A DNA stretch of 64,000 bases. Origin: Eutreptiella sp. 'Long Island Sound 2002' (taxonomy: Eukaryota > Protista > Euglenida). The stretch covers positions 163,246,001 to 163,310,000 of the forward strand of contig OZ038378.1 of NCBI GenBank assembly GCA_964036045.1, written 5' to 3'. This document shows positions 33,280 to 37,931 of the stretch, one piece after another. How positions within the stretch are numbered: position 1 is the first letter of the stretch; each line of letters starts with the position of its first letter. The notes below the pieces were generated by a model. That model saw only the letters and a list, made by a program, of their open reading frames with translations. It searched no databases and had not been told where the DNA came from. The position numbers and the translations under genes are program-made.

Positions 33280-36200
33280 CTAACCCTCACCCTAACCCTA
33301 ACCCTAACCCCAATCAAGACTGAATATTGGGACCGAGCTGGTGGGGCAGGGAACATCAAGTATGCCTGGTGAGGGACACCAATGAGTCACACATTGAAGG
33401 CCGTTGACATAGTGGAATCAGCTTGCAAGTGATCCCCTTCACCACAAGGCCCACTTTCAAGGCTTTTTTGGACTTTGAGGGGCCAAAATGCCCCCAAAAT
33501 GGGCTCAAAATGGGCTCATTTCACGCGTTGGTGCACCCCAAATGGTCTAGGATGAGGTTTGGAAAAATGCGTTTTTGACCCATTTTGGACCCATTTTTGG
33601 TCCCAAAACAGCCCATTGTCAAGGCATTTTGGGATTTTCGGAGGACGAAAATGGGTCACCACAAGCTCAAAACAATCCAAAAACACTTGTGTTAGCGTCG
33701 CACATGGTCTAGGATCATTTTTGAGAAAAGTCATCTTTTTGCCCCTATTGGACCCTAATGACCCATTTGGGCACCCACCTGTTTGGGCTTGAGCTTGCAG
33801 CTTGCCGCAGCCTACCGGGCCTAAGTACGGGGGTCTAGGCGTCCGTTTGGGCAATTCTGAGGGGTGGAAACCACAAAAAGTGGGGGATTGCGGGTGGAGT
33901 AGGTGCCCTCGGAATCGCGTTTTGAGCCATGTAGCCAAAGATATGGCCTGTTCTTGGTTTGTGGCTGTTGCCAGCCAGTCTACACAAAATTTGGGGCTTC
34001 TAGGGGTCTATTTGGGCCGTTTCAAGGACATATGGTGGAGTTCGAGGGCCGCAAAGGGCTCGCTGACACGGGAAAGTCAAGCCGCACGTAGAGTGTACCC
34101 ACCCTTTCCATTCGCTTGGCCGTTTTGAACGGGTTCTACGGTTGTTTTGGCCCAAAAATGGCTGCTTTTGGCCCTAAATTGCAGTTTTTGAAACCGACGT
34201 CCGCCACTTGCGACAACTGTTCCCAGCCGCCACCATTGAGTTTCTTGCTGAAACTTTGTGTGGTTGTCCCTCACACCCATAGGTGTCATCCACCAAAATT
34301 TCAACCTAATCCGAACCACCACGACGGAGTTCTGATTTTTGCCCATTTCGCGCGTGCTGCGGCTTGCTTGCTGCTTGCTGCTGCTGTTGCTGCTGCTGCT
34401 AAACCTGGTAGGTCCACCCTAGACCCTGAAAAGGGTTATAAAACCAAGACTGGTTCCACCAGCTCGGTGACCCTAATGAAGACTGAATATTGGGACCGAG
34501 TTGGTGGGGGAGGGAACATCAACTATGACTGGTGAGGGACATTAAGAATGATTCACACCTTGATGGCTCTTGACAAAGTGAAAACAGGTTGCAAGTGAAC
34601 TCCATCACCACGAGGCCCACTTTCAAGGGTTTTTGGACTTCTCAGGGGCCAAAATGCCCCAAAATGGGCTCAAAATGGGCTCATTTCACCCGTTTGTGCA
34701 CCCCAAATGGTCCAAGATGAGGTTTGCAAAAATGCGTTTTTGACCCATTTTTGACCCATTTTTGGTCCCAAAACAGCCCATTTTCAAGGCATTTTGGGAT
34801 TTTCGGAGGACGAAAATGGGCCACCACAAGCTCAAAACAATCCAAAAACACTTGTGTTAGCGTCGCACATGGTCTAGGATCATTTTTGAGAAAAGTCATC
34901 TTTTTGCCCCTACTGGACCCTGTTGACCCATTTGGGCACCCACCTGTTTGGGCTTGAGCTTGCAGCTTGCCGCACCCTAGTGGGCCTAGGTATTGGGGTC
35001 TAGGCGTCCGTTTGGGCAATTCTGAGGGGTGGAAACCACAAAAAGTGGGGGGTTGCGGGTGGAGTAGGTGCCCTCGGAATCGCATTTTGAGCCATGTAGC
35101 CAAAGATATGGCCTATTCTTGGTTTGTGGCTGTCGGCGTTTGGAGCTTCTGGGGGCCTTTTTGGGCCGTTTCCGGGACATATCATGGAGTTAGAGGGCCG
35201 CAAAGGGCTCGTTGACACGGGGAAGTCAAGCCGCACGTGCAGTGTACCCACCGTTTCCCTTTGTTTGGCCGTTTTGAATGTGTTCCAGGGCTTTTTTGGC
35301 CCAAAAATGGCTGTTTTTGGCCCTAAACTGCAGTTTTTGAAACTGAGGTCCACCACTTGCGAATCCCGTTTTCGGCCGCCACCGTTGAGTTTCTTGCTCA
35401 AACTTTGTGTGATTGTACTTCACACCCATAGGTATCATGCACCAAAATTTCAACCAAATCCAAAGCACCACGACGGAGTTCTGATTTTTACCCATTTCGC
35501 GTGTGCTGTTGCTTGCTGCTTGCTGCTTGCTTGCTGCTGCTCAACCTGGTAGGTCCACCCTAGACACAAAAAAGGGTTATAAAACCAAGACTGGTTCCAC
35601 CAGCTCGGTGACCCTAACCCTAATCAAGACTGAATATTGGGACCGAGCTGGTGGGGCAGGGAACATCAACTATGATTGGTGAGGGACATTAAGAATGATT
35701 CACACATTGATGGCTCTTGACAAAGTGAAAACAGGTTGCAAGTGAACCCCATCACCACGAGGCCCACTTTCAAGGGTTTTTGGACTTCTCAGGGGCCAAA
35801 ATGCCCCAAAATGGGCTCAAAATGGGCTCATTTCACCCGTTTGTGCACCCCAAATGGTCCAAGATGAGGTTTGCAAAAATGCGTTTTTGACCCATTTTTG
35901 ACCCATTTTTGGTCCCAAAACAGCCCATTGTCAAGGCATTTTGGGATTTTCGGAGGACGAAAATGGGTCACCACAAGCTCAAAACAATCCAAAAACACTT
36001 GTGTTAGCGTCGCACATGGTCTAGGATCATTTTTGAGAAAAGTCATCTTTTTGCCCCTATTGGACCCTGTTGACCCATTTGGGCACCCACCTGTTTGGGC
36101 TTGAGCTTGCAGCTTGCCGCACCCTAGTGGGCCTAGGTATTGGGGTCTAGGCGTCCGTTTGGGCAATTCTGAGGGGTGGAAACCACAAAAAGTGGGGGGT

Positions 36201-37931
36201 TGCGGGTGGAGTAGGTGCCCTCGGAATCGCATTTTGAGCCATGTAGCCAAAGATATGGCCTATTCTTGGTTTGTGGCTGTCGGCGTTTGGAGCTTCTGGG
36301 GGCCTTTTTGGGCCGTTTCCGGGACATATCATGGAGTTAGAGGGCCGCAAAGGGCTCGTTGACACGGGGAAGTCAAGCCGCACGTGCAGTGTACCCACCG
36401 TTTCCCTTTGTTTGGCCGTTTTGAATGTGTTCCAGGGCTTTTTTGGCCCAAAAATGGCTGTTTTTGGCCCTAAACTGCAGTTTTTGAAACTGAGGTCCAC
36501 CACTTGCGAATCCCGTTTTCGGCCGCCACCGTTGAGTTTCTTGCTCAAACTTTGTGTGATTGTACTTCACACCCATAGGTATCATGCACCAAAATTTCAA
36601 CCAAATCCAAAGCACCACGACGGAGTTCTGATTTTTACCCATTTCGCGTGTGCTGTTGCTTGCTGCTTGCTGCTTGCTTGCTGCTGCTCAACCTGGTAGG
36701 TCCACCCTAGACACAAAAAAGGGTTATAAAACCAAGACTGGTTCCACCAGCTCGGTGACCCTAACCCTAATCAAGACTGAATATTGGGACCGAGCTGGTG
36801 GGGCAGGGAACATCAACTATGATTGGTGAGGGACATTAAGAATGATTCACACATTGATGGCTCTTGACAAAGTGAAAACAGGTTGCAAGTGAACCCCATC
36901 ACCACGAGGCCCACTTTCAAGGGTTTTTTGGACTTTGAGGGGCCAAAATGCCCCAAAATGGGCTCAAAATGGGCTCATTTCACCCGTTTGTGCACCCCAA
37001 ATGGTCTAGGATGAGGTTTGGAAAAATGCGTTTTTGACCCATTTTTGACCCATTTTTGGTCCCAAAACAGCCCATTGTCAAGGCATTTTGGGATTTTCGG
37101 AGGACGAAAATGGGTCACCACAAGCTCAAAACAATCCAAAAACACTTGTGTTAGCGTCGCACATGGTCTAGGATCATTTTTGAGAAAAGTCATCTTTTTG
37201 CCCCTACTGGACCCTGTTGACCCATTTGGGCACCCACCTGTTTGGGCTTGAGCTTGCAGCTTGCCGCACCCTAGTGGGCCTAGGTATTGGGGTCTAGGCG
37301 TCCGTTTGGGCAATTCTGAGGGGTGGAAACCACAAAAAGTGGGGGGTTGCGGGTGGAGTAGGTGCCCTCGGAATCGCATTTTGAGCCATGTAGCCAAAGA
37401 TATGGCCTATTCTTGGTTTGTGGCTGTCGGCGTTTGGAGCTTCTGGGGGCCTTTTTGGGCCGTTTCCGGGACATATCATGGAGTTAGAGGGCCGCAAAGG
37501 GCTCGTTGACACGGGGAAGTCAAGCCGCACGTGAAGTGTACCCACCGTTTCCCTTTGTTTGGCCGTTTTGAATGTGTTCCAGGGCTTTTTTGGCCCAAAA
37601 ATGGCTGTTTTTGGCCCTAAGCTGCAGTTTTTGAAACTGAGGTCCACCACTTGCGAATCCCGTTTTCGGCCGCCACCGTTGAGTTTCTTGCTCAAACTTT
37701 GTGTGATTGTACTTCACACCCATAGGTATCATGCACCAAAATTTCAACCAAATCCAAAGCACCACGACGGAGTTCTGATTTTTTCCCATTTCGCGCGTGC
37801 TGCTGCTTGCTTGCTTGCTTGCTGCTTGCTGCTTGCTGCTTGCTTGCTGCTGCTAAACCTGGTAGGTCCACCCTAGACACAAAAAAGGGTTATAAAACCA
37901 AGACTGGTTCCACCAGCTCGGTGACCCTAAC
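33280..37931 (+). repeat. Tandem array of four ~1.15-kb units separated by telomeric CCCTAA, each with asymmetric inverted repeats
   Basis: GACTGAATATTGGGACCGAG starts at 33318, 34481, 35628 and 36775 (periods 1163, 1147, 1147). Inverted pair ACCGAGCTGGTGG / CCACCAGCTCGGT; (GCTT/GCTG)n near the right end; no credible ORF. Confidence 0.93.

Follow-up and report, generated by a model that had tools for sequence, protein, structure and literature searches.

We analysed a window of 64,000 nucleotides, the whole stretch of DNA considered here, from the euglenid Eutreptiella sp. 'Long Island Sound 2002', located on the chromosome-scale contig C1 (OZ038378.1, 201 Mb) of a genome of 2.28 Gb. Between positions 33314 and 37924 it contains four units of 1,134-1,157 bp, arranged head to tail, punctuated by CCCTAA telomere-type hexamers as the initial annotation had described, and bounded by TCAAGACTG at the left and CTCGGTGA at the right (Table 1). 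The 13-bp inverted repeat ACCGAGCTGGTGG / CCACCAGCTCGGT occurs eight times in the window, against 0.09 occurrences expected by chance, and the asymmetry ascribed to it was borne out, with one arm 18 nt inside the left end of the unit and the other 2 nt from the right end. The (GCTT/GCTG)n microsatellite and the motif AAGACTG at both ends are likewise present as claimed, and units 2 and 3 are indeed almost identical. Pfam searches with the open reading frames (ORFs) of the unit gave no credible match (best E value 0.007, none near the curated cut-off), Rfam gave no match at E values up to 1, hammerheads included, and ARAGORN found no tRNA. The unit is non-coding, with no detectable protein or RNA gene; the ideas that it could be tRNA-like or a telomerase RNA were dropped, as Rfam and ARAGORN both came back empty.

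Table 1. Components of the telomere-repeat-punctuated array, in window coordinates.
Feature	Position	Strand	Description	Other copies in the array
Left tract	33278..33313	+	six CCCTAA-like hexamers (36 nt), interstitial, telomere-like	
Unit 1	33314..34470	+	full length, older lineage, ~91% identical to units 2-4	
Spacer	34471..34476	+	one CCCTAA (6 nt)	
Unit 2	34477..35611	+	begins TGAAG instead of TCAAG	
Spacer	35612..35623	+	two CCCTAA (12 nt)	
Unit 3	35624..36758	+	99.2% identical to unit 2	
Spacer	36759..36770	+	two CCCTAA (12 nt)	
Unit 4	36771..37924	+	98.6% identical to unit 3, microsatellite longer	
Right flank	37925..37930	+	one CCCTAA hexamer (6 nt)	
13-bp inverted-repeat arm	36744..36756	+	2 nt from the right end of unit 3	34456, 35597, 37910
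Partner arm	35642..35654	-	18 nt inside the left end of unit 3	33332, 34495 (1 mismatch), 36789
Internal microsatellite	36651..36688	+	(TGCT/TGC)n, unit 3	34355-34400, 35504-35541, 37798-37854

The units belong to a large family. A 27-mer from the right end (unit plus strand, at most one mismatch) gave 9,959 matches in the genome and a 27-mer from the left end gave 9,039, with both strands equally represented, and a reversed control pattern gave none. The family has about 9,000-10,000 copies, found on all chromosomes as solos and as arrays; on C1 they lie along the whole contig, and arrays reach about eleven units. Mean pairwise identity among 59 sampled units was 95.4%, the youngest differing by less than 1%, and relatives whose interiors are just 75-82% alike still have almost the same termini. 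At four loci we found longer variants that share 226-584 extra bases beside the same internal breakpoint, a pattern expected if a larger parent had undergone nested deletions. Longer coding elements with the same ends, a possibility raised in the initial annotation, did not turn up among the motif pairs 1.4-3.8 kb apart that were fetched from C1, all of which were units with nested transposon insertions or deletion variants. Regarding nested insertions, those in units at loci L036 and L037 measure 1,113 and 794 bp and have GGGG...CCCC ends, GC-rich terminal repeats of the GCACTGCGCGCGCAC type and 5-bp target duplications, and a unit at L039 carries a 386-bp insertion with an 11-bp duplication.

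To describe the flanks of the family we surveyed 50 loci outside the window. Directly before 71 of 80 left ends and directly after 82 of 89 right ends stands a CCCTAA-like hexamer, as the initial annotation had led us to expect; in total, 153 of the 169 ends adjoin a hexamer in phase, and the opposite orientation was never observed. The spacers between units are exact multiples of 6 in 50 cases out of 51 (6-60 nt, 12 being the commonest), and the sole off-register spacer is explained by a 1-nt deletion. The array in the window is real and not an assembly artefact, since head-to-tail junctions of this kind, made of hexamers, recur at dozens of further loci and also on a metagenome contig of independent origin, where a unit with 92.5% identity is joined to the next copy through 18 nt of hexamers. 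True telomeres, consisting of (CCCTAA)n tracts of 2.3-5.5 kb, are present at the left ends of C2, C4 and C5, and no unit was found within 8 kb of them. The first 8 kb of C1 and C3 (L040 and L042) show no telomere repeats, unlike C2, C4 and C5.

Direct evidence for insertion comes from locus L014 (on C5), in which two adjacent copies of the same small host repeat are found, one filled and one empty. They differ by exactly the 1,134-bp body of the unit, which in the filled copy has ...CCCTAA on one side and CCCTAG... on the other; the target is not duplicated and the number of hexamers is unchanged. The same host repeat carries a unit at L009 too, at CCTTAA|ACCCAA, and there also no hexamers have been added. 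These two loci show that a pre-existing telomere-like tract can take up the element at a hexamer boundary without any scar. The specificity for TTAGGG put forward in the initial annotation is supported by one filled/empty pair together with the fixed register and direction of the copies. Since the element starts with T, the L014 junction can equally be read as GGGT^TAGGG. Solo copies sit at unrelated unique sites. For one of the loci, L025, no empty site was found, its flank consisting of a satellite and unique DNA with no paralogue; the satellite (L025:2641-2900, period of about 104 bp) also forms long arrays on C9 and C15.

Of the sampled loci, roughly two thirds fall within copies of two small repeats that are related to each other, which we call X and Y. 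Y is a terminal inverted repeat (TIR) element of about 540 bp with the inverted ends CACGGGGG...CCCCCGTG and target duplications of 7-8 bp (GTGCATCC, GTGCTCT and GTGTACC), seen at L039:1812-2110 and 5993-6225 and also at L031 and L037, and it contains an internal CCCTAA tract followed by poly-C. X is a relative of about 600 bp, and in both repeats it is the internal telomere-like tract that houses the units. In X (L014:2640-2840 and 3530-3730) a CCCTAA-like tract is accompanied, about 200 bp further on, by an inverted TTAGGG-like tract, forming a hairpin-like pair. Junction patterns gave 213 filled vs 2 empty carriers for Y and 195 vs 1 for X, the empty counts being lower bounds and not decisive, as the empty-carrier patterns, of at most 35 positions, spanned tracts of only up to 14-16 nt. 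The youngest units borne by X cluster weakly, and unit lineages are mixed across carrier types. Part of the copy number therefore stems from transposition of the carriers X and Y, both small TIR transposons.

Read on the minus strand of the window, the unit opens with TC; the 13-bp repeat then occupies nt 3-15 and is succeeded by about 1.1 kb of sequence with the microsatellite and by the partner repeat 18 nt before the end, after which comes AATATT. On this strand the right-end arm is the 5' subterminal repeat, and it has a hairpin nested in it: folded as single-stranded DNA, the first 47 nt reach -6.9 kcal/mol (z -2.98), and only 1 of 200 shuffled sequences folds as well. The insertion site GGG|TTAGGG can be written as GGGT^TAGGG, which is compatible with a T^T target. 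The layout described for HINE/Helitron2 elements comprises a subterminal inverted repeat 2-4 nt from the 5' end, a nested inverted repeat, a microsatellite and insertion at TT without duplication (PMC4067079). Given the fit of the minus-strand layout to this description, the T^T target and the arrays, we think that the unit is probably a non-autonomous Helitron2/Helentron (HINE-like) DNA element, in other words a target-specific variant of a known rolling-circle kind and not a new system. The initial annotation had pointed to the same type, and its structural side stands (minus-strand layout, T^T-compatible target and arrays). Its wording of an 'undescribed mobile system' was too strong, since telomere-repeat-specific Helitrons have already been published for Paramecium (PMC13085455).

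The unit does not follow the rule of canonical Helitrons (HLE1), which run 5'-TC...CTRR-3', carry a hairpin of 16-20 nt some 11 nt before the 3' end and insert between A and T: on the plus strand it is flanked by A|...|C, on the minus strand by G|...|T; the 3' end of the latter strand reads CTTGA, and there is no 3' palindrome of 16-20 nt. With regard to possible autonomous partners, the Helitron Rep domain PF14214 has at least 150 genome matches above the curated cut-off (863 candidates, of which 150 were scored, all 150 above the cut-off), in open frames of up to 2,631 aa. Examples of intact loci are C13:5141068, C2:47279491, C1:30.85 Mb and those at C11:29.05-29.24 Mb. Rep matches with long open frames occur in same-strand clusters, 12-28 kb apart (C11:29.05-29.24 Mb, C2:71.50-71.56 Mb and C9:69.22-69.27 Mb), which looks as if autonomous elements might also stand in arrays.

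One could argue against this classification on several grounds. The 3' end has no stable hairpin, AATATT being accompanied by a 3-bp TCA/TGA stem of -0.9 kcal/mol (z +0.75); the link of the unit to a Rep/helicase element is inferred from architecture; and scarless insertion without target duplication was seen in a single clean filled/empty pair, that of L014. Besides, copies at unique sites are flanked by short tracts of rather uniform length (left, about 11-14 nt; right, 8-20 nt), many of which have ...TAACC as their last bases, the array at L034 is flanked outside its tracts by an 11-bp direct repeat, CCCTATGATAG, two left-truncated copies (L049 and L045) keep the hexamers on the right and have none on the left, and 49 of the 50 telomere-like tracts in the 274 kb sampled around family copies adjoin unit sequence. 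The short regular tracts, the L034 repeat and the scarcity of free tracts hint that the element may bring its hexamers along, something that Helitrons are not known to do. That the element brings or seeds TTAGGG at new non-telomeric sites, beyond homing to existing tracts, seems to us unlikely; seeding could, for instance, proceed through hexamer-containing ends of the transferred strand, or through a telomerase-coupled or reverse-transcriptase step, and would make the element the chief source of this genome's interstitial telomeric sequence. The same four observations on tracts, direct repeat and truncated copies would also suit the main rival, a non-autonomous retroelement (Penelope-like or dependent on another reverse transcriptase) whose RNA ends in (CCCUAA)n, primes on TTAGGG-ended DNA and so spreads hexamers. 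Penelope-like elements with an N-terminal endonuclease are biased towards microsatellites, insert head to tail in several copies and leave no target duplication that can be discerned, and those devoid of the endonuclease bear telomeric repeats in reverse complement (PMC8557442); moreover, the element that abuts the array had been taken for Penelope-like in the initial annotation, a label given from the sequence only. We nonetheless regard a retroelement as a doubtful explanation, because the L014 insertion is scarless and leaves the hexamer number unchanged, 5' ends are almost as numerous as 3' ends (9,039 vs 9,959), and neither a hammerhead nor any other Rfam match was obtained. Partial copies upstream of a unit are just 87-93% like that unit, no closer than unrelated copies, and there is no single-event pseudo-LTR (long terminal repeat) of the Chlamys type; a BLAST search of the unit against the window gave no match inside the neighbouring element; and subterminal inverted repeats with a nested hairpin are a Helitron2/Helentron signature.

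Site-specific recombination would offer another route, in which a tyrosine recombinase (Crypton or DIRS-like) recombines a circle, with a CCCTAA core between the 13-bp repeats, with genomic CCCTAA, so that the core ends up on either side of the insert and nothing is duplicated. In a tandem or a circle the arms do bracket the hexamers, giving a 16-bp stem with the hexamers in the loop, and insertion is scarless and in register; but, in contrast to symmetric recombinase sites, one arm is 2 nt and the other 18 nt away from the hexamers, the spacer comprises anything from 1 to 10 hexamers, we saw no recombinase partner, and no empty core site, of the AAGACTG type or other, was found locally (an AAGACTG crossover site lacking the body was absent from about 100 local units), so that we hold this route to be very unlikely. 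One could also see the units as a plain satellite or a segmental duplication, with unequal crossing-over and the TIR carriers as the sole means of spread. Some arrays do have a perfectly constant period, as at C1:22.17 Mb and 27.99 Mb, where it is 1,161 bp, and the X and Y carriers are nearly all filled, within the limits given above for the empty counts. Units 2-4 of the window form a fully supported clade and are 98.6-99.2% alike, the best copies elsewhere reaching 96%, and they are a local duplication; a minority of arrays, this one included, is locally homogenised. Against the satellite stand the solos at unrelated unique sites, the existence of a filled/empty pair, the mixing of unit lineages across carrier types and the conservation of termini across diverged subfamilies, as well as the fact that neighbouring units are usually no more alike than random pairs (95.8% on average vs 95.4% for all pairs). 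As a sole mechanism it is largely refuted and, in our estimation, extremely improbable, although it remains a contributing process. The units of one array mostly fall in different clades, and this mixing, together with the similarity of adjacent units to random pairs, shows that most arrays are stacks of separate insertions into hexamers beside resident copies. The adjacent-unit identities and the clades also rule out single-event multimers and plain tandem duplication as the main origin of arrays. A capped linear molecule was rejected as well, both flanks having the same polarity.

Taking the unit as a Helitron2/Helentron-type element, we propose the following mechanism. The sense strand of the element would be the minus strand of the window, and one strand would be nicked and transferred by a Rep/helicase transposase whose gene would lie elsewhere in the genome. 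The element lands between two telomere-type hexamers, at GGGT^TAGGG or equally GGG^TTAGGG, always in one direction and without a scar, as at L014. As each landing leaves hexamers on both sides, the site stays a target and later copies stack head to tail, as the relationships among the units show. Unequal crossing-over also enlarges arrays, as in the case of units 2-4, and copies spread passively inside the two small TIR transposons whose internal telomere-like tracts they have colonised.

The array is bordered on the left by another element (about 27645-33276) with terminal direct repeats of about 240 bp (27645-27885 and 33038-33276, 97% identical), which stops exactly where the hexamers start and has some 870 first-look relatives in the genome. 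Its nine longest ORFs gave no Pfam match at E values up to 1, and a tenth (32133-32720, minus strand) gave weak CCHC zinc-knuckle matches just below the cut-off. We considered this element as a partner of the units and discarded it, given the lack of Pfam matches in the nine ORFs and of any unit BLAST match inside it. The 8-mer CCTGAAGC, with seven occurrences in the 64 kb, is found at 27635-27642, just outside the left end of the neighbouring element, and at 37931-37938, just outside the right end of the array. As it encloses both, the target duplication of the neighbouring element would seem to take in the hexamer tract and the units as well, in which case either the hexamer tract belonged to the end of that element or the units inserted at that junction. 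Elsewhere in the window, a degenerate telomere-like tract at 18276-18330 is followed by just the first ~35 nt of a unit-like left end, and an internal fragment of a unit (positions 186-858), with neither end and no hexamers, lies at 49850-50698 on the minus strand.

If our interpretation is right, these units would represent a second, independent case, in euglenids, of rolling-circle-type transposons that recognise the telomere repeat itself, and, unlike in Paramecium, they would do so inside chromosomes rather than at their ends. Most interstitial telomere-like sites in the sampled 274 kb go with the element, and such sites can affect chromosome breakage, recombination and the binding of telomere proteins. 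The 6-nt register and the strict polarity would provide a clean handle on how a Helitron-type enzyme reads its target. Furthermore, satellite-like arrays are here built by repeated homing, and not by duplication alone. In the literature on Euglena repeats we found nothing specific.

Telomere-repeat-specific insertion is also known from non-LTR retrotransposons, namely TRAS and SART of Bombyx and MoTeR of Magnaporthe. They resemble our units in their fixed register and orientation, in forming head-to-tail arrays with short repeat tracts and in having short non-coding relatives (MoTeR2); they differ in that the units have no poly(A) or variant-repeat 5' end, include few truncated copies, are interstitial and have inverted-repeat ends. 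Regarding Penelope-like elements, both the endonuclease-less Athena and Coprina and the microsatellite-targeting Chlamys and Naiad (PMC8557442) offer parallels in their reverse-complement telomeric repeats, head-to-tail multicopy insertions and indiscernible target duplications. The units differ from them in lacking a hammerhead and a single-event pseudo-LTR and in an inverted-repeat architecture that is not Penelope-like, and, unlike Athena and Coprina, they lie along all of C1 and not at chromosome ends, none being within 8 kb of the telomeres of C2, C4 and C5.

The closest parallels are found among Helitrons. HINE/DINE-1 elements, which are the non-autonomous partners of Helentrons, and Helitron2 elements (PMC4067079) are, like the units, non-coding, with asymmetric subterminal repeats, a nested 5' inverted repeat and an internal microsatellite, and they share the T^T-compatible target, the absence of target duplication, the frequent tandem arrays and the very high copy number. 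The differences lie in the target, which is the TTAGGG hexamer for the units and any TT in T-rich DNA for HINEs, in the sequence next to the ends, which consists of hexamers and not of T runs, and in the 3' end, where the repeat of the units stands 18 nt from the end, compared with 38-60 nt in mites, and the stem-loop is weak. The Helitrons of Paramecium aurelia insert into C4A2 telomeric repeats (PMC13085455, 2026) and have in common with the units the C-strand telomeric repeats on both sides, of one polarity and of variable length, a single fixed orientation, ORF-less derivatives and internal satellites. They cap germline chromosome ends, however, and belong to a separate Rep clade, whereas the units described here are interstitial and dispersed, in short tracts that often lie within other transposons.

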